A stretch of DNA of 64,000 nt from NCBI GenBank assembly GCA_965644295.1, contig CBFFRP010000185.1, positions 128,284 through 192,283 on the forward strand. The letters are read 5' to 3'. The DNA is from Paraphysomonas bandaiensis. Its lineage: Eukaryota; Protista; Chrysophyceae. Made by a program: the position numbers and the translations under genes. The notes below the pieces were generated by a model. It was not told where the DNA came from, did no database searches, and worked only from the letters and a program-made list of their open reading frames with translations. Below, piece by piece: positions 1 to 49,830 of the stretch (positions within the stretch are counted from its first letter, which is position 1; every line of letters begins with the position of its first letter).

Positions 1-609
1 ATATGTAGAGTTATAGTGCCCACTATTTGCTGCTCTTTCATTGTTATCTCGAGTGTAAACCTAAATATATACGTATTTTTTTAAGATAGATCATCGCCAT
101 ACATGTAATTCATACTGCACTTCCGTTTTCCGAAAGAATTAGAAGATATTGTGTACTAGTATACAACCTTAGCCTTTGACTAGGTTTTTACACCAATGTT
201 GGTGTGACTAGAAAATTATCCAAGTTGACTAGGTCCAATAATAGATTCCGTTGTAATAGGCTGTCTAGATTCGTGTGACAATTCAAAGTATGAGAAGCGA
301 ATGACGCCTACTAGACGCCTTGAAATGTTAATGTGGTTGGATAAATCGATATCTTTGGGATGAGGTTGTGTGAATGTCTGATTATTTAGCAATAGGCGTT
401 GAGACCTTGCAGCAATTAGTGGCTAGAAGAATGCTAGTCATACTAGTTAGACCACTACCCGTAACTAATCAATACAAACTCTTTTATCCTACTATTTAAC
501 GCTACGAAAGCTGCTTGTGCGTCGCCGCAAGCACCAAGGTGCAACCACTTCCGTTCTTTTTGTGTGATATGAAATTCGCCTTTATCGTGTGTCCGTGGAC
601 TCACCGGCA

Positions 610-1664
610 CTATTGATCTGGGGGTCTCCCTTTGGGATGGGTCTCCAGTGGTGTTGGAGGGGGCTCAGCGTTCTGGATTAGGGTCCTGAGTGCACCTAGT
701 TCCAGATGTGTGGGTTGAGAGTGGTGGGGATTGTTGGGAGGAGGAGTTGGGTTTGTAGTCTGTGTTACTGTGCTCCTGTGGGGCCGCGGGTGTAGATAGA
801 GTTGTCGAAGCCGTCGGCGTTGTGGAGGTCTGGGCAGTCCAGTGCTATGTCGGGTAGGACCTGTGAGGTGTGCACGTGTGTCTGGAGTCGGGGACGCTGT
901 GGGGGGTCTTCGTTGGACCCCTAGTAGTCGAAGGACTCTCGGACGTTGTCTTGACTGACTGCGTTTCGGACGGGGTCTCGGGAGTAGCCTGGGCGGCCTT
1001 TTGGACATGGTGATATAGCGACAACCGCGATCCTGTAGCATAAGCTTCGCTGCAGTGTAAAGCGGTTGCAGGAGATTAATAACCGCTGTTTCTAGGTTCC
1101 GTAGACTGTGTGCCGTCAGGTGGTTGTGTATGGCATCTTCGAAGACCGTTTCCAGTTGGGCTGCTGTGATGGTTCCAGTCCAGTATCTCTCGACCTGTGG
1201 GATGGAGGGATTCCAGGCTCTGCTGGAGAGTCTCCGTAGTGCAGATGTGATCCAGTTGGGTAAGGTCTGAGTTCTCTGTATTTCGTGGAGCACATTTTTA
1301 TGCGATTGAAATGCAGTTTCCCTTATTTGGGTGATGGATTCATGTGTGCAGTCGAGGCACATATGTTTTAGGGAATCTAGTCGAAACCCGCAGTCAGAGC
1401 ATGCGGCTTTGGTCAGGTCAAGCCCCTGTTTGGTTTTGGCCCGGTTCCTCCCTATGCAGAAAGATTTGTCCCATGTCAGTGCCGTGTTGAGTATTCTTTG
1501 GCGTAGATTTGAGCTGAGTTTGTCTTTGGATGCACTGCCATCCGCTTGAGCTAGTTTGCGCGGGAGGTGTACTCCGCTATTGGTCCAGTAGCCAGGCGCT
1601 CGATCAGGATTGTGTCCGTAGCGTTGATCTCTGGTTGAAGTGTAGTTCTCAAGTGTCCTTAGGT
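610..1664 (-). pseudogene. LINE-A ORF, C-terminal segment (CCHC zinc finger, basic Pro-rich tail ending PKGRPPDQ)
   Basis: Near-identical to ORF 21465..22907; CSDC..HMCLDC motif; cut off from the upstream ORF by the Gypsy insertion. Confidence 0.88.
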
Positions 1665-8267: not shown

Positions 8268-9375
8268 TGTAAACAACTCAGGTCTTGCAACCTAAGATCA
8301 CTGAAAAGATATGTGAAATGGTTGTTTATCGAAACAACAAAACAGAATGCTTATTTAACTTATCACAGCCAGCATATACAAGCTCCCAAGTATCTCGCAA
8401 CCTTAAGCTCCCAAAAGGTAGATCAATTAACTTAGCTATGATTAGTTAGATAAAAGAAGTGAGAAGACAGGTTCCTAGTCTAAGACCCCCATAGTACACA
8501 TGTCAAGCAAACAACCAGCACCGTTCAATAAATATGACCATACATGCAGTACACTGAATACAGTTCATGTCCCATGTCCATTGTACCCAAAATGCGAACT
8601 GAAATAAGCCTAGAAAACGTCCTCACAGAAAACCGCCAGTTTACTGGTCCCGAAAAAACCAAAATCCCCGATTTCGGGACCGAAAACCCCAAAACCACCG
8701 GTTTTGGAATCTTACAGTAAAATCTCCGATTTCTGAGCTACAAAGACCCCAAAACAACCAATTCCCGAGTCTTGCAAGAAATCACCAATTATAGAGTCCC
8801 AAAAAAACAGAAAACACTAGTTTTCGAGTCACTAAAAATTCGCCAGCTCATTTCATGATAAACTCAATCTCATTCCAAACGTTAAATGCATTAACACATA
8901 TCGATTTCGATTAACATTCCCAACGAAAGTTACACCTTCATATCTGTATCATATATCACCCATACCGTCCTCTCGCCATATGCCTAAGGCCCCTTTCCAA
9001 TTTGTGCACCTTCCGGAGAAAATTGATGGAGTGTGATAACAGCAAATAGTCGTATAGCTGAGTCCAACGAGCTACTTAAATCGCTATAACACCGACACCG
9101 ACTACCATATGAATATAGGTGTATACCAGTGAGTAGAAATCCATTGCTCAAAACCGAAATTGTGTGCTCGAGGGCAAGTCCTAGTACTCTTCTTCCTCAC
9201 AGTCCTCTCATAATATAATAATAAACATTTACTACATTCGTTTCCTATATTAAACCAGCTACATGCCTTAAATGAATATCATAGTTGTATTGGAGTTATA
9301 TTAGTCAGTGTCATTATCATAATATTATATCATTAAACATGAGACAAGGGTGTTATAAAAGCCCACGGCTTTACA
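8268..9375 (-). repeat. 5' LTR of Gypsy element (1108 bp)
   Basis: Direct repeat of 1665-2773 with TG...CA ends. Confidence 0.96.
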
Positions 9376-12300
9376 AGGTCGCAGAGATCCTGGAAATTAG
9401 TAAGGAGTGGGCTAGAGTAGTATGGCCGTCTTGTACTGTGCATACGCCAGTGCCATAATCCAGCAGTTAGTAAGCGTTCGATGGCACTGTCAATCGCAAT
9501 TGTACAGACAGTGTAGTTATTTTTTCCAAGGATGCGATCGACTTCATGCCAGTCTTCACCCGCAACTGCGTCCGCAATATAGATGCCCTTGTCCTCAAAC
9601 GTCCACTCCGTTTCATCTGTGGTACGTCTTTCGGGATGAGACCTCACCCAGGTCACCTGTCGTTTGCAATCTCTGCTGGCTGCGATGCTTTCGAGTAGTA
9701 CCCCTTTTGCACGGTGACCGAGAGCTCTGCGTCTTGTGGAGAGTGCTTCCTCAGTGCGGGTGCACACTGCCTGACAGTCTGTGTGGCTTCTTATGTGTTC
9801 GGGAATACGTGTTGAGAGTATAAGCCCCATGGCTGTGCCTATGAGTTCATATGCGTATGAGTCCAAACCGGGCACGTCACGAAAGGGTGTATCTAGTCGT
9901 AGTATTGTGGTTGTACCATCTTCCCAGGCATTTTCTGGGGGTAAGTAGACGACCGCTGCACCTCCTCGGTGTGTCCATCGGGTTCGCGGATTGACATGAG
10001 TGAGGCGACGAGTGGAGAGCGCACTGGCTGTGTATGATCCATCTGTGAAGATAGCCTTGAAAGTATCTGGTTGGACACTATTAAGGCCGAGTTCTTGTTT
10101 TAGGTTGGTCAGCATGTGTTCATCCTGTGGTTCGGGGGGCTCAGGTTCCTGAAGGGTAAGGCCCAATTCCGTTCCCCATTCCCTGAGGCTGAGAACATAG
10201 TGGTGGTATTGGGGCTGTGGCTCTGTTGTCTGAGTGAGTAGAAAATGTGCTGCTTGACCTGCTTCTCCCCCGAGGGTTATTGCGCGCTGTAGAGATCCCC
10301 ATTTTTGCTCCTGCGCTGAGTCTGTGAAACGTTTCATACCTAATCCGTTGTGCTTGAGTGAGAGGTAGATCAGTTCCGTGGGGTATCCAGGGCCTAGACT
10401 GAGGGCCTTTCTGTAGAGGGTTGCGCAAGCAGCGTCAATTTCTCTGTACCAGTGTAGCGGCCATGAAGCTTTGGTGGCTCTATATAGAGCAAAGTCGGTA
10501 TGATTTGGGTCTCGATAACCATGACTTTACAGCCGGCTGAGGCCTGTTTGATCCCTAGGTGTGTGGTCACGACTTTCAGGTATTTTAGACACCAGTCATG
10601 GGAGGCCTTGTCTGTGATTGTGAGAGGAAGGTCTGCTCCGAGGTAATGTATCGACTCTAGTGATGTTTGGATAGGGACTGGGTGTGGGCGCCATGACCAG
10701 TCGTAGAGAATGATGTAGCCAATGGGGTCGGAGGACTTGTTGGAATCCTGTAGGATCGGAAACACTGTGCAAACTACTTTGGGGATAGAGAGTTCCATTC
10801 CCGAAAGTACGCAGAACGCAGATATTTGTTGGGCAATGAGTTGGGCAGCGTGTATGGATTTAGCTATTGTGTTAAGATCATCCGCGAAGGAGATCTTTAT
10901 TTCGCCTGTAGTCGGAGTCGTGAGTTGAATAGTTGGTAACGTTGGACTCGTTGTTGACAGTTCAATGTCCAGCCACGTGAGAAGGATGTCGTAGAGTGCC
11001 ACCCAGGCGCATGTGGATTCTGTGCCCCCTTGGGTGATACCCCTTTCGGCTTCGAAACCCAGACTGAATAGTGCAATGAAGTGGCCGTCTGCGGACAGGA
11101 GGTCAAGGAGAGAACGTGGCTCTATGTTGTTTGCCATGAATGGTGTCCAGGGAAATGTTAGACCGCCGGCATCTAAGTTGCCAAACCAGTCAACTACATC
11201 GTCCGGAACGCCCAGTCGTGCCCACGCGAGACGCATGAGGTTAGGCGCAATTGAGTCGAAGGCCTTCTTGAAGTCCCAGAGTGTACATATATGCTGGTCG
11301 CCTTTTCGTCTTGCTTCTTCTGCAGCCGCGAGTACCCGTAGTATCGCTGTGTCCGTCCCGTTCCTCCAGCGATAACCATGCTGGGACGGATGCAAAACTT
11401 TCTGTTCCTCCCATACGGTAAGAATTCTATGAGTGATTATCCTTGTTAATATTTTCCTACTGACTTCAAGCAGACCAATCGGTCGGAGATTAGTGAGGGA
11501 GGATTCTCCTGGTTTCTTGAGAATGGGAGACATTACCCTGTCTCTCCACCAAATGGGCACATGTTTATGTTTCCAGAGAGATCTGGTGAGGATGTAAGCC
11601 TCTCGCTGAACTACCGGTGGCCAGGATTTGACCATGTTGGAGGAGACCATTGAGGGTCCAGGCGCGCGGTTGAAGGATAGAGAGTGAAGTGTGCAGTAGA
11701 ATTCATCCTGGGTGATGTCTTTTGCAAGAGTAGATTTGAGTGTGGCTGCCATGGCCGGAGTGGTCTTGGTACAAAGGGCCCGTCGTAACCCCAGTTGCAG
11801 GGGAAGAGGAATTTTCGAGCGGGGGTGGAGTGGTTCCTGGCATGTCGCTGAGCCCGGATCAAGAAGTGATTTCCACCATGTAGGGTCATCCTGGAGCTGT
11901 TGTGCTACAGGGTCAAGTCCAGGAGGTTTGGCATGATGTTCACGGAAGTGCGCATTAATGCCTTCATGAATGTCTTGCGGCGTTGTGAGGATGTGTCCGT
12001 CCGTTGTTTTCACCGTGGTAAGTCGGAGTGGTGTTTTGACCTTGAGACCAATTTTCTGAAGAATTGCTTGAAGTCTTTTCTGCTGTAGCAGTGCCTCCAT
12101 CTGCTTGGTGCGAGCCGTGAGTCTAGTCCGCATTTCTGTCCTGGCTCTTCCATGAAGAAGTCCTCTCAGTCGCAAGGCAATTCGGAGAAGGTTTTTCTTG
12201 GTGGCTTGCTTTGCGTTCCAACCCAGGATTACTCGTGGGTCCGCGTTGCGGTGGCTGCACCAGAAGTTGATGTCCGATATGCCTTTGATGTGACCCTGAG

Positions 12301-13036
12301 AACTCCTGAGATAGGAGTCCCATCGGGCGAACCATGCAGTGATGATTTCGTGGGTGGGGGTGGTTGCCGGGGGGCCGCGCCATCCATGCCGTTTGTATCC
12401 AGCAGAATTGAACATCTTTTGGATAATCCGCAAAACCATGAGCATTCCTTCCTGTATTACTCTCATTTCCGGGGAAAAGCCATTCTTGAACTTTGAGCGT
12501 GTGCGCTGACAACGTTCGTGTAGGCGTGTGCTATGTGTACATGCAGGACGCTTCGCCTCAAGCGAAGCCTGGAGGGTTATGTGATGGATGGCCGCTAGTC
12601 TGTTGGCTGCCACCTCAGGAGGGAGTATGGCAGTCGATCCGTTGTCTAAATGTGGTAGTTGTGCATGAAGTTGGAGGAGTCTTGCGGTGTATGCCTGTAC
12701 TGCCTTGGAGTCCTTCGGGTTTACATTGAGACGGGGGGGGATTCGGAGGTGCGACTCAGGTGGTCGAGGGTCAAGATTGACTGGTACGGTGAAACCGACC
12801 CAGACCGGTCGATGATCGAAGGCTGCTGCGAGTAATGAGGGGGAGTCAAGGCAGCCAGTGTCCGTAACAGACATGTTCGGAGGTAACGGCGTGTGTAGAA
12901 TATGATCGATCCGCGATATTCCTTTGTCTAATCTGTGGAAGGTATGATATGTTTTCCTGGGTAGGAGAAGCTCATGGAGTGGTGCAGCCAGTTGGAGTTT
13001 GTCGGCTGGGATGAGGTTGTTGTTCAGAAAGCTATT
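9376..13036 (-). pseudogene. LINE-A ORF: APE endonuclease C-terminus, reverse transcriptase, RNase H; +2 frameshift at ~10483
   Basis: SRIDHIL...DHRPV (APE end); LRPIGL, QHGYR, DFKKAFDS, GITQG, FADD (non-LTR RT); FTDGS...ELIG...TDCQ...WVRSH...IAD (RNase H). Removing one TA from ctcTATATAgag joins ORFs 10394..13060 and 9333..10337. Confidence 0.9.
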
Positions 13037-13269
13037 CGAAAAAAATAGAATTGAAAGCAATTAAATGGATGCTTTATAATAATAAATTTTGCTGTCTTCT
13101 ACTACTGAGAATTATTTATACATCATATATGAATATAACAAGAACAAAATTTTAAACATGCGCAAATCACCCAAAACTATGGGATTTAAGAAATCCAATA
13201 GTCTACAGCCTAAGCATATATAATATTATAATATTATTGGAATACGTATGTTTCCCTAAGATAGAACTG

Positions 13270-21222: not shown

Positions 21223-22978
21223 GTAGTGAATGTCTGATTATTTAGCAATAGGCGTTGAGACCTTGCAGCAATTAGTGGCTAGAAGAATGCTAGTCATACT
21301 AGTTAGACCACTACCCGTAACTAATCAATACAAACTCTTTTATCCTACTATTTAACGCTACGAAAGCTGCTTGTGCGTCGCCGCAAGCACCAAGGTGCAA
21401 CCACTTCCGTTCTTTTGTGTGATATGAAATTCGCCTTTATCGTGTGTCCGTGGACTCACCGGCGCTATTGATCTGGGGGTCTCCCTTTGGGATGGGTCTC
21501 CATTGGTGTTGGAGGGGGCTCAGCGTTCTGGATTAGGGTCCTGAGTGCACCTAGTTCCAGATGTGTGGGTTGAGAGTGGTGGGGATTGTTGGGAGGAGGA
21601 GTTGGGTTTGTAGTCTGTGTTACTGTGCTCCTGTGGGGCCGCGGGTGTAGATAGAGTTGTCGAAGCCGTCGGCGTTGTGGAGGTCTGGGCAGTCCAGTGC
21701 TCTGTCGGGTAGGACCTGTGAGGTGTGCACGTGTGTCTGGAGTCGGGGACGCTGTGGGGGGTCTTCGTTGGACCCCTAGTAGTCGAAGTACTCTCGGACG
21801 TTGTCTTGACTGACTGCGTTTCGGACGGGGTCTCGGGAGTAGCCTGGGCGGCCTTTTGGACATGGTGATATAGCGACAACCGCGATCCTGTAGCATAAGC
21901 TTCGCTGCAGTGTAAAGCGGTTGCAGGAGATTAATAACCGCTGTTTCTAGGTTCCGTAGACTGTGTGCCGTCAGGTGGTTGTGTATGGCATCTTCGAAGA
22001 CCGTTTCCAGTTGGGCTGCTGTGATGGTTCCAGTCCAGTATCTCTCGACCTGTGGGATGGAGGGATTCCAGGCTCTGCTGGAGAGTCTCCGTAGTGCAGA
22101 TGTGATCCAGTTGGGTAAGGTCTGAGTTCTCTGTATTTCGTGGAGCACATTTTTATGCGATTGAAATGCAGTTTCCCTTATTTGGGTGATGGATTCATGT
22201 GTGCAGTCGAGGCACATATGTTTTAGGGAATCTAGTCGAAACCCGCAGTCAGAGCATGCGGCTTTGGTCAGGTCAAGCCCCTGTTTGGTTTTGGCCCGGT
22301 TCCTCCCTATGCAGAAAGATTTGTCCCATGTCAGTGCCGTGTTGAGTATTCTTTGGCGTAGATTTGAGCTGAGTTTGTCTTTGGATGCACTGCCATCCGC
22401 TTGAGCTAGTTTGCGCGGGAGGTGTACTCCGCTATTGGTCCAGTAGCCAGGCGCTCGATCAGGATTGTGTCCGTAGCGTTGATCTCTGGTTGAAGTGTAG
22501 TTCTCAAGTGTCCTTAGGTCGCAGAGATCCTGGAAATTAGTAAGGAGTGGGCTAGAGTAGTATGGCCGTCTTGTACTGTGCATACGCCAGTGCCATAATC
22601 CAGCAGTTAGTAAGCGTTCGATGGCACTGTCAATCGCAATTGTGCAGACAGTGTAGTTATTTTTTCCAAGGATGCGATCGACTTCATGCCAGTCTTCACC
22701 CGCAACTGCGTCCGCAATATAGATGCCCTTGTCCTCAAACGTCCACTCCGTTTCATCTGTGGTACGTCGTTCGGGATGAGACCTCACCCAGGTCACCTGT
22801 CGTTTGCAATCTCTGCTGGCTGCGATGCTTTCGAGTAGTACCCCTTTTGCACGGTGACCGAGAGCTCTGCGTCTTGTGGAGAGTGCTTCCTCAGTGCGGG
22901 TGCACACTGCCTGACAGTCTGTGTGGCTTCTTATGTGTTCGGGAATACGTGTTGAGAGTATAAGCCCATGGCTGTGCC
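21223..22978 (-). mobile_element. LINE-A copy 2, 5'-truncated within RNase H
   Basis: Near-identical to 370-1664 plus 9380-9839; ORF 21465..22907; 3' end cattcactac. Confidence 0.95.
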
Positions 22979-23535: not shown

Positions 23536-24143
23536 TATAGGAAAGTCTGATTATTACATGAGAACGGTTGTGTACAGAAACTAGTTTATATCTATAGACT
23601 AACTACAGTAATAACTAGATTTGCTAAATACTACTAGTGGCGGGCAACCGTCTCGGGACTGCTTGTGCATCGCTGCGAGCACCATGGTGCAACCGTCCCT
23701 TGTATTGAGGTTAGTCGGGGGGTCTACCTTTAGGCAATGTGTCTGGCGGGCCTGTATCATGGGTTATACGGGGGGTGGTTGGGGCGAGATGTATATGAGA
23801 GTATAAGTCGATGGTGGAGATGGTGCTGGTTGTTGAGGTGGGGTTTCGGCCACAAGTAAGGAAGAATTGTTTCCGGAGTAGTTGCGCTTGCCTCTGTCGG
23901 GTCTGCTGGACTCTTGCAGAGGATAGAATTCTTGGGGTGCGGTTAATCAGGGGTACGCCCATTGAGGTAGGAGTCTGCGACGTTTAAGGGAGGGTCAGAG
24001 TGTCAGAGTTATGTAGATGGGAGGATAGTGGTCCGAGGGAAAGTGAGATGGTCCGAGGTGGAGGCGTGTAATCTGTAGAGTCTCGGGGCGCCGCTGACTG
24101 CTGTGAATCAGCTGGACGTAAATAGAGTAGGTGGGGTTGTCTG
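23536..24143 (-). mobile_element. LINE subfamily B, 3' fragment (copy B1)
   Basis: ORF end DTLPKGRPPD*; 3' UTR core related to LINE-A; near-duplicate of 24144-24545. Confidence 0.8.
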
Positions 24144-25540
24144 TATATATAAGAAAGTCTGATTATTACACAAAAACGATTGGGTACAGAAACTAGTCAG
24201 TATTATATCTATAGGCTGACTAAACTGGGCTTGCTATGTACTACTAGTGGCGGGCAACCGTCTCGGGACTGCTTGTGCATCGCTGCGAGCACCATGGTGC
24301 AACCGTCCCTTGTATTGAGGTTAGTCGGGGGGTCTGCCTTTGGGCAATGTGTCTGGCGGGCCTGTATCATGGGTTATACGGGGGGTGGTTGGGGCTAGAT
24401 GTATATGAGAGTGTAAGTCGGTGGTGAGATGGTGCTGGTTGTTGAGGTGGGGTTTCGGCCACAAGTAAGGAAGAGTTGTTTCCGGAGTGGTGGTGCATGT
24501 CTCTGTCGGGTTCGGACTCTTGTAGAGGATAGAATTCTTGGGGTGGATGTCGCTTGGAGTAGTTGGAGTATTTTAGGTGTCGGTTGAGTATCCTGTGACT
24601 GGCGTTGCTGTGAGTGTGGTGGGTTCGTAATCGGTGTTACTGGTGCTGTGTCTGTGTTGTGGTGTCTCAGACCTCTGTTTCGAAGCATGCAGAGCCCTCC
24701 ATCATATATATAGATAGGGGGAGCAGGATAGAGGTTACGGATTTTTCGAGGGCGTGGAACTGATGTTCGGGCTGTGAGCTGGATATGTGGCGTCCGAATG
24801 CGTCGGCCAATTGTGTGGCAATAATGTGGCCGGTCCAGTAGCGCTCAACCTGGGGGATGTTTGGATTCCATGCGGCTTTAGCTAGTTTGATTATGGCGGT
24901 GTGAAACCAGGGATGAGGAAGCGTGTGTTTGCGAAGTTTGTCGAGCTTACTGTGGTGTGCTTGGTGAACATCTTCACGTATTTGAGTGAGGTCCGGGTGT
25001 GTGCAAGTGAGAAGCATGTGCGCCATCATGTTGTCTGATGGTTGTGCACAGTCTGGGCATGCGGAGGCCGTTAAAAGTGATCATGCCCGGTTTTTCCTTT
25101 GGCTCGTCGGTTTCTTCCCATCGCATATGATTTGTCCCATACGTATGCCGTCTCGCGTATACGTTCTGGTAGAGAGATGATGGAGTATTTGGAGGAATTA
25201 TGGGTACGGAGAGGATGGAGCTTGTGTGGGAGCCTTGTTCCGCTGCGTGGCCAATACTGCGGGTCTCGCTGCGTTTGTGCAGCATACACGCTATCTCGTC
25301 GGAGGGTGTATTGATGGAGGTCCCGCTGGTGATGGAGATCTGTGACGTCTCCTAGCATGTGAGGAGGTGTGTATCGTATGTTCGCCAGTGCCATTGCCCC
25401 GTGGTGAAGAATTCTTCCAGTATGTGTGTAGCGTCAGTTGGGTTGTCTAAGTTGGGTTCGCGTGTGTGTGGGCGTGAAGAGTTTGAAGAGTAGGAGAAGT
25501 GGTCTGTCGCCCAGCTGTGATTCTCTGCTGAGACACCATC
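24144..25540 (-). mobile_element. LINE subfamily B, degenerate 3' fragment (copy B2)
   Basis: Frameshifted peptides YWPRSG..WDKSYAMGRNR, CPDC..HMLLTC, WNPNIPQVERYWTG are homologous to LINE-A; (TA)n tail; 5' end approximate. Confidence 0.85.
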
Positions 25541-48782: not shown

Positions 48783-49830
48783 CAGGGCCTGGTAACCATT
48801 AATGGCCCAGTAATGGTAGTCCAGTTCCCGGCAATTATAATGGCCCATTAATGGCCATTAATACCTACTAACTTAAAGAAGCAGATAATACCGCTCATAT
48901 AATATATTGTGTGGTGCTCCCTTAATTACTAATTTTTAATTAAAAATAACAGACTACTTCTCGCTCTCTACTGGGGCACATCAGGATCTTCTTGCAGGGC
49001 TTCATGGAGGGTATAAGCATCCCACAACACGGCTCGTAAGAATAGCAACGATTCTAGACGATATAGATTCATGTGTCTACGCTCAGATGTCATAATCAAC
49101 TTTGCACGACTAAAGATCCTCTCAACAACATTAGAATGTGCTTCAATATGAAGCAAGCAGCGGTAGTGGACTAAGAGGTACTATAAGTCGCTGTCTAGAA
49201 CAAGCTGTGCAAAATCAGTTCTTTCACTCTCGTCCTCGTTATTTCTGTCGGTTGCACCAACATCAATGGATGAATCTAGTTGCAGTTGATGTATAACTGC
49301 TCTTCTCTCATTGCCTGTCAACTCTCTTTTATAGTTCCCTTGAATTTTTTAGCCATTGCCTTCTCAAAAATTGCACTGGCAACAATGCTTGCATTCAGGG
49401 AAAGGTATGGATATATATATATTGACAGCTTATTATTTAGCAGTAGGCGCTAAAAATCTGCACCAATGTAGTGGCTAGTTAGTTGAATGCTATAAGCAGA
49501 CTATTTAGACCTCTATCCATAGCTAATCAGCACAAACGCTATTATCCTACTATTTAACGCTACAGAAGCTGCTTGTGCGTCGCCGCAAGCACCAAGGTGC
49601 GACCACTTCCGTTCTTAATGTTGATTGTGAGTTTCGCCATGATCGTGGCAACAATGCTTGCATTCAGGGAAAGGTATGGATGCAGCTCTGGAAATTCTTG
49701 TAGCAGTATATCAAATAACTGGCGGGCTTGGTACAAATTGGTTCCAACTCTTTGTAAGGCAAGCGTAACACTCTGTAATTTTTCAAGCTGTGTCAAACAT
49801 TGTTTCAGCTGGAGTAAGAATCTGTAGAAA
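48783..49830 (-). mobile_element. hAT DNA transposon remnant (family 2, TIR CAGGGCCTGGTAA)
   Basis: TIR shared with the MITE at 55797; transposase fragments SNVVERIFSRAK..RRHM..LESLLFLR (hAT dimerisation domain) and LQSVTLALQ; other end not found. Confidence 0.8.
49413..49645 (-). mobile_element. LINE-A-related 3' UTR fragment inserted in the hAT remnant; 36-bp TSD
   Basis: tggcaacaatgcttgcattcagggaaaggtatggat at 49377-49412 and 49646-49681; insert homologous to 380-590; (TA)n tail. Confidence 0.88.

Follow-up and report, generated by a model that had tools for sequence, protein, structure and literature searches.

The LINE copies of this locus raise the question of why the reading frames of separate families should close with the same seven residues, Pro-Lys-Gly-Arg-Pro-Pro-Asp (PKGRPPD), and at which step of the element's life such a peptide could act. 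The locus, referred to here as the window, is the whole 64,000-nucleotide stretch of Paraphysomonas bandaiensis DNA that was analyzed, and it holds copies of two LINE families, LINE-A and LINE-B, together with a SINE-like element. For LINEs other than mammalian L1, little is understood of how the protein finds its own RNA and selects its site of action. The present elements amount to a natural experiment in this respect, in which a tail of more than 100 residues has been free to change except at seven of them, in several old families that inhabit one host and carry one 3′ RNA core. The first-pass annotation of the window proposed that the peptide stalls the ribosome that has just made it, and that the reverse transcriptase (RT) is thereby kept beside its own template. 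In the following, PKGRPPD is described as a well-supported, lineage-specific motif of an unusual LINE group, and a mechanism is proposed in which it would act in the finished protein.

The motif in the window and in the complete element

As the annotation had reported, PKGRPPD closes the LINE-A and LINE-B frames at all four of the minus-strand ends in the window, where it is followed by a stop codon or by glutamine and a stop. The codons of LINE-A copy 1 (616..636, minus strand) are CCC AAA GGG AGA CCC CCA GAT, followed by CAA at 613-615 and TAG at 610-612; those of LINE-A copy 2 (21471..21491, minus strand) are identical, including the CAA and TAG, with the stop at 21465-21467. LINE-B copy 1 (23714..23734, minus strand) reads CCT AAA GGT AGA CCC CCC GAC and stops at TAA 23711-23713, and LINE-B copy 2 (24324..24344, minus strand) reads CCC AAA GGC AGA CCC CCC GAC and stops at TAA 24321-24323. 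The differences between these four sites are all in third positions and all synonymous, in agreement with the earlier reading of them. A back-translated pattern allowing at most one mismatch recovers only these four sites from the window and none from 100 shuffles of it, and each site closes a long minus-strand frame.

The window copies are 5′-truncated. The longer LINE-A remnant (21465..22907, minus strand, 480 aa) retains an RNase H-like part, a CCHC knuckle, the RYWTG domain, the disordered tail, and the motif; the remnant of LINE-A copy 1 (610..1362, minus strand, 250 aa) has the same tail and motif; and a third, interrupted LINE-A copy (9333..13060, minus strand) comprises RT and the RNase H-like part, its motif-bearing 3′ end being missing. 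A full copy (L043) lies elsewhere in the genome and, like a metagenomic protein of the same family (P0163, 3114 aa), consists of one giant frame that encodes, in order, a SET/PR domain, an AP-type endonuclease, RVT_1, an RNase H-like domain, a CCHC knuckle, and a helical domain with the RYWTG signature. This frame is closed by the LINE-A tail of about 140 residues, the terminus being ...HPKGRPPDQKRR-stop, and the motif ends frames of 3100-3700 aa. Poly(A) metatranscriptome contigs span the LINE-A motif region, and judged from these contigs the family is probably transcribed.

Two features of the giant frame are recorded in their own right. The SET/PR domain, which is of the lysine-methyltransferase type, lies just before the AP endonuclease in the same frame in families A, B, and D (residues 1185-1289 of P0163, residues 1553-1657 of L045:3-9998:+, and residues 1188-1292 of L047:1843-9279:+). 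Additionally, residues 1-11 of P0163 are M-R-P-P-R-K-P-P-D-K-Q and residues 3103-3114 are H-P-K-G-R-P-P-D-Q-K-R-R, with PPD at both termini and nowhere else in the 3114 residues.

The annotation had placed the motif at the stop or one codon before it, which is true of the window copies; elsewhere, 0-22 codons follow. Their number is 0 in families B and D, 1 in the window copies of LINE-A, 4 in families A and C, and otherwise 11, 15, or 22, and the motif is therefore near-terminal rather than bound to the stop. The Gln-stop ending of both window LINE-A copies (TAG, at 21467 and 612) is a derived, subfamily-specific nonsense change from AAG to TAG; AAG is kept in most genomic LINE-A copies and in the RNA-library contigs, which consequently end in PKGRPPDQKRR-stop.

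The architecture of the polyprotein bears on the idea that PKGRPPD serves some other post-translational purpose, in localization, as a degron, or as a site of modification or processing; the invariant lysine, for example, might be acted on by the SET domain that the element itself encodes. A SET/PR domain is found in the same polyprotein in all families, the motif has one invariant lysine, and the N-terminus of LINE-A has a similar basic-PPD string (M-R-P-P-R-K-P-P-D-K). However, this look-alike string is not conserved, being altered to R-K-P-P-N-K near the start of family B and without any counterpart in family D, and the variable extension past the motif argues against a C-end degron. A signal of this kind is considered improbable. 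Since a weak SET hit is also present in a relative that ends in the terminal motif of the sister clade (described below), SET and PKGRPPD do not co-occur exclusively, and the proposed link between the two was set aside.

Selection on the peptide

In the 62.5-Mb assembly, the degenerate pattern CCN AAR GGN MGN CCN CCN GAY has 644 exact matches (879 with one mismatch allowed), whereas the reversed control has 0. The first 100 places include at least 25 different synonymous spellings of the motif; each of the seven wobble positions varies, and arginine is encoded by AGA, AGG, CGA, CGC, CGG, and CGT alike. A pattern count of this type is biased, as it admits synonymous variants only, and the families were therefore chosen anew by RT homology alone, which gave LINE-A, a second family with 73% RT identity to it, LINE-B with 49%, and a fourth with 45%. 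Every intact frame of these four families (1384-1942 aa) has a terminal PKGRPPD. The survey of related LINE C-termini, which the annotation had named as a check on its claim, accordingly finds the motif present in close relatives inside the lineage, in four of the four families found by RT.

When the last 520 residues of the four families are aligned, the folded part is 41-68% identical and alignment is hardly possible over the final 105-140 residues, a tail in which the motif is the sole invariant block. Between any two families, 3-5 of the seven motif codons differ synonymously, and among identical residues of the folded domain 48-66% of the codons differ. Because the synonymous differences in the motif match the rate in the folded domain, there is no constraint on its nucleotides beyond coding, and the age of the families is such that synonymous sites are largely randomized. 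In a chimeric, non-autonomous family (L004, L016, L028, L030), the 3′ UTR contains a stranded second copy of the motif, now decayed to PKRRPPD. The contention of the annotation that selection sees the peptide and not the nucleotides is thus upheld by the synonymous rate, by the wobble and arginine switches, and by the decayed UTR copy. On the evidence of these comparisons, strong purifying selection on PKGRPPD at the amino-acid level, within one LINE lineage, is well supported.

The same data bear on the opposite reading, in which the 21 nucleotides are conserved as nucleic acid, being part of a 3′ recognition element, or are alike merely through recent common descent. The motif is indeed always near a conserved 3′ element. 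However, the third positions vary at all seven codons, with AGR/CGN switches at arginine, synonymous differences are as common as in the rest of the ORF, the motif copy in the UTR has decayed, and the SINE works without the motif. The codon variation and the synonymous rate leave this reading effectively refuted and with next to no probability.

The C-terminal tail as a carrier of a proposed docking peptide

The annotation described a Pro/Thr/Arg-rich and poorly alignable linker of more than 100 aa ahead of the motif. In LINE-A this tail (21468..21893, minus strand) follows the folded domain, is about 142 aa long, and has the motif at its end; its residues are 20% Pro, 18% Arg, and 11% Thr, which confirms the description, and it is predicted to be disordered (pLDDT 32-50). 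An AlphaFold2 model of the last 520 residues, built on a 32-sequence alignment, is confident for residues 1-388 and gives pLDDT 32-50 for residues 390-520, and the motif is not packed in cis onto the RNase H/CCHC domain in this model. Tail and motif together have the composition of a short linear motif, i.e., 3-10 conserved residues in a fast-evolving, predicted-disordered region.

The surroundings of the motif differ between families. Position -3 is usually acidic, position -2 is Thr, Pro, or Ser, and position -1 is His, Tyr, Leu, or Met. Families B and D have a common G-P-P-D-T-L before the motif, and families A and C have a common helix-like stretch, T-H-L-x-L-G-x-L-R-T-L-I-Q-N, about 25 residues upstream of it. 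When the C-terminal ORFs and four 40-residue tails were scanned against Pfam, no family was returned for the tail, and the string PKGRPPD was not found in a full-text literature search. PKGRPPD is well supported as a real, new, and lineage-specific LINE motif.

We tentatively propose that PKGRPPD is a docking peptide acting in the finished protein, a reading to which we give slightly less than an even chance. The motif is a short linear motif that ends the disordered, basic, Pro-rich tail of a giant LINE polyprotein and is kept invariant in all active families of one LINE lineage; by virtue of the flexible tail, the seven residues would be able to bind a single partner common to all families in the host. 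A host protein is one candidate for this partner; another is a part of the element's own RNP, such as the core of the shared 3′ RNA element. Binding would then serve RNP assembly or targeting. The sequences and the model show the motif, its conservation as a peptide, a tail predicted to be disordered, and a 3′ RNA element that accompanies the motif, and from there we infer partner binding and the identity of the partner. Short peptides in disordered C-terminal tails are known to tether retroelement enzymes, as in the LDSSPP peptide of Ty5 integrase, which binds Sir4, in Ty1 integrase, which binds AC40, and in the tail of MLV integrase, which binds BET proteins.

Relatives of the C-terminal region and the sister clade

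An exhaustive profile search with the C-terminal region among 1.84 billion representative proteins yielded 319 relatives. Among the best 150 of these 319, PKGRPPD occurs in only three, which are marine metagenome fragments of the same families. A word-based protein search returned two distant relatives only, and a JGI metagenome scan with the C-terminal profile gave no confirmed relative.

A sister clade, recognized by an R-[IL]-W-L-G signature and 26-30% identical, has the same folded domain, a long variable tail, and a short terminal motif of its own. As judged from the C-termini of P0002, P0003, P0012, P0015, P0018, P0019, P0030, P0033, P0036, P0045, P0051, P0112, and P0132, this terminal peptide is [YFH][TS][LIF]S[DN][AS]A[FCY]; it is proline-free and lies about 10 residues from the C-terminus. 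It is preceded, 25-35 residues upstream, by L-x-x-x-L-E-N-T-F-x-Q, a string similar to the L-R-T-L-I-Q-N found in families A and C. In the nearest alignable outgroup (P0063, 28% identity), the aligned place is occupied by P-D-V-T-L-P-D, and no significant similarity was detected between its 3′ UTR and the tail element; on these two counts P0063, a single case, is without both the peptide and the RNA half. Taken together, these comparisons indicate that PKGRPPD arose within one LINE lineage and has stayed unchanged since. The arrangement in the sister clade suggests, moreover, that a terminal docking peptide is ancestral and that its identity was swapped between the sister clades.

Two further relatives are recorded here. 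In the 2893-aa relative P0095, a Ulp1-type (C48) cysteine protease domain occupies residues 2546-2755, after the RNase H/CCHC region. In P0052, a distant relative, a canonical AT-hook-like sequence, R-P-K-K-G-R-P-R-K-P, is located at about residues 385-400, some 20 residues past the same folded C-terminal domain.

The 3′ RNA element, the SINE, and the element ends

Downstream of each motif copy in the window lies a 3′ RNA element, which the annotation had put at about 10-60 nt from the motif-bearing end. In LINE-A (21360..21410, minus strand), an outer stem encloses a CUUG-capped and a GCGA-capped hairpin, and the element starts 51 nt after the stop; the same element is found in LINE-A copy 1 (504..554, minus strand). 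In LINE-B (23655..23699, minus strand) the element begins 11 nt past the stop and its outer stem shows covariation with the LINE-A stem; the same element recurs in LINE-B copy 2 (24265..24309, minus strand). Both distances fall in the range given. The folding energies of the 3′ elements are no better than those of shuffles (z of -0.1 and -0.4), and support for the structure therefore comes from covariation and not from folding energy. Between the motif and the 3′ arm of the hairpin, tails of the A/C type have 93-96 nt, those of the B/D type 45-48 nt, and those of the chimeric family 219-226 nt. The hairpin core has 1102 genomic occurrences, about twice the motif count.

The SINE-like element (49420..49735, minus strand) carries the LINE-A 3′ tail. 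Its homology to the LINE begins about 17 nt after the LINE stop and the motif is absent from it, as anticipated by the annotation, according to which the SINE copies the RNA half only. All families and the SINE end in AATAAT(C/A)AGAC(A/T)TTC plus 3-5 bases, often TA or AT, and lack poly(A); this terminus is seen at the window's 3′ junctions, at about 368-380, 21224-21236, 23540-23556, and 24150-24166, and in the loci L001-L053. A 3′ stem-loop and a 3′ terminus are thus common to the LINE families and the SINE, as in LINE/SINE pairs of the stringent type. The 40 nt past 23 distinct insertions have a GC content of 34-36%, versus 46% for all the sequence examined.

In another reading, the terminus of the protein is a nucleic-acid hook. 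The core of an AT-hook is a GRP tripeptide after a basic residue, and the K-G-R-P of the motif could likewise enter the narrow groove of an AT-rich target DNA, or of the structured 3′ RNA, with the Arg/Pro-rich tail adding unspecific affinity; taken jointly, groove insertion and tail affinity are regarded as rather doubtful. The motif does end a basic disordered tail with 18% Arg, a canonical KKGRPRK closely follows the corresponding folded domain in the relative P0052, and the 23 insertion flanks are richer in AT than the overall sequence. However, that bias is mild and may only mirror intergenic composition. In the motif itself, GRP is followed by Pro-Asp and not by basic residues; K-R-R follows three residues on in family A only, and families B and D end at Asp without any basic residue on the C-terminal side. 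No Pfam AT_hook match was obtained for four 40-residue tails at E values of up to 10, a search in which short matches are easily missed, and GRP is not enriched in the tails of the relatives, for which chance would roughly predict about 12. Additionally, the region that binds the 3′ stem-loop in LINEs of the L2 clade lies between EN and RT and is not C-terminal (PMC4176376), which leaves a tail reader at the C-terminus without precedent.

Possible ribosome arrest and the RT-less derivatives

The mechanism put forward in the annotation is that nascent PKGRPPD slows or arrests the ribosome at Pro-Pro-Asp and that the folded RT, tethered through the disordered linker, is thereby kept next to its own mRNA's 3′ RNA element. 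Its premise is sound, since PPD is one of the tripeptides listed, for bacteria and yeast, as strong pause sites dependent on EF-P/eIF5A, and stalls ribosomes that lack EF-P or eIF5A (PMC5499558). The frame that the motif closes, moreover, runs to 3100-3700 aa, and a conserved RNA element begins 11-51 nt further on; it is the peptide that is under selection, and the SINE homology starts past the stop. With about 35 residues in the exit tunnel, a linker of 70-105 residues would be left, which should be enough to reach round the ribosome. There is also a precedent in XBP1u, in which translational pausing lets the nascent chain position its own mRNA.

Several observations point the other way. The P, K, G, and R of the motif are as invariant as its PPD, and the sister clade has a proline-free motif in the equivalent place. 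Both the number of codons after the motif (0, 1, 4, 11, 15, or 22) and its distance to the hairpin (45-48, 93-96, or 219-226 nt) vary, from which it follows that the motif has no fixed geometry relative to either the stop or the hairpin. PPD pauses are brief where eIF5A is normal, and PPD is a common tripeptide. Ribosome arrest in eukaryotes invites quality-control decay, and a true arrest would therefore put both the mRNA and the nascent chain at risk. Arrest at Pro-Pro-Asp is held to be distinctly unlikely and, as far as can be judged from the sequences, would be a less likely reading than docking, four indirect points leaning against it.

The derivatives that have lost RT and kept the motif are pertinent here. 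In a metagenome contig from ENA (L054:2501-4000, encoding P0166), LINE-A codons 1-466 are fused in frame to the last 33 codons, and the protein terminates in L-G-A-L-R-T-L-I-Q-N ... PKGRPPDQKRR, after which come the complete 3′ tail and terminus. The second derivative is the chimeric element of about 1.7 kb, present in many copies (L030:233-1900; also L004, L016, and L028; related, L010). Its 5′ part contains about 830 nt like the LINE-A 5′ region (85% identity), and it is followed by a unique Pro/Ser/His-rich frame, open for up to 404 codons, which has its own PKGRPPD plus 22 codons; the LINE-A-type 3′ tail then brings in the decayed second motif, PKRRPPD-H-T-R-R-stop. These two independent RT-less derivatives with the motif in a translated frame would fit a translation-dependent role in cis. 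As there are two cases, and the chance for both to have the motif in frame is 1 in 9, they constitute a lead on such a role and not evidence for it.

The full device envisaged, in which a PPD pause at the end of a frame of more than 3000 codons would let the finished RT seize its template, is very unlikely in our estimation. It would be remarkable if shown: the RT-less derivatives that keep the motif and the SINEs that keep only the RNA half would then be two ways to parasitize a cis-preference device.

We return to the docking peptide as the preferred reading. It is favored because the seven residues are equally constrained, because spacing and extension are free, because the sister clade has an unrelated peptide, and because there are precedents for tethering. 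Against it, RT-less derivatives with the motif are not obviously expected if the motif serves the RT protein only, the tail matches no Pfam family, and the motif contains the PPD pause tripeptide and may have a translational role. Whatever the partner, be it the ribosome, RNA, DNA, or a host protein, the peptide marks a step that these elements cannot do without, and at seven residues it is easy to test.

Comparison with known systems

The arrest peptides, namely, XBP1u, hCMV uORF2, fungal AAP, and bacterial SecM and TnaC, have a C-terminal peptide conserved at the amino-acid level, as is the case here. However, the known arrest peptides are longer and have defined contacts in the tunnel, and several need the stop at a fixed place, in contrast to the 0-22 codons that follow PKGRPPD. 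AT-hooks are similar in that a K-G-R-P core stands at the terminus of a basic disordered region, and dissimilar in that PKGRPPD is without flanking Arg/Lys on its C-terminal side and without a profile match.

The tails of Ty5, Ty1, and MLV resemble that of the present LINEs in having a conserved peptide of 6-10 residues in a variable, disordered C-terminal tail, a peptide that in Ty5, Ty1, and MLV stays constant on account of its host partner. Those elements are LTR elements or retroviruses with known host partners, whereas here the bearer is a LINE and docking is a candidate that sequence comparison has brought forward.

The cis preference of L1, and the capture of nascent ORF2p by Alu at ribosomes, likewise involve a protein that has to bind its own RNA and a SINE that borrows the RNA signal. 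L1 employs a poly(A) tail for this, in contrast to the present LINEs, which are without poly(A) and have a structured 3′ element instead; to our knowledge, L1 has no known stalling peptide. A parallel at the level of the RNA is provided by UnaL2/UnaSINE1 of eel and ZfL2 of zebrafish, in which, as here, a 3′ stem-loop and a conserved 3′ terminus are shared by LINE and SINE (PMC4176376). The tail-binding region of ZfL2 is located between EN and RT, and no conserved C-terminal peptide is described there (PMC4176376). Unlike UnaL2 and ZfL2, the LINEs described here belong to another lineage, which bears both RNase H and SET domains and closes its giant frames with PKGRPPD.
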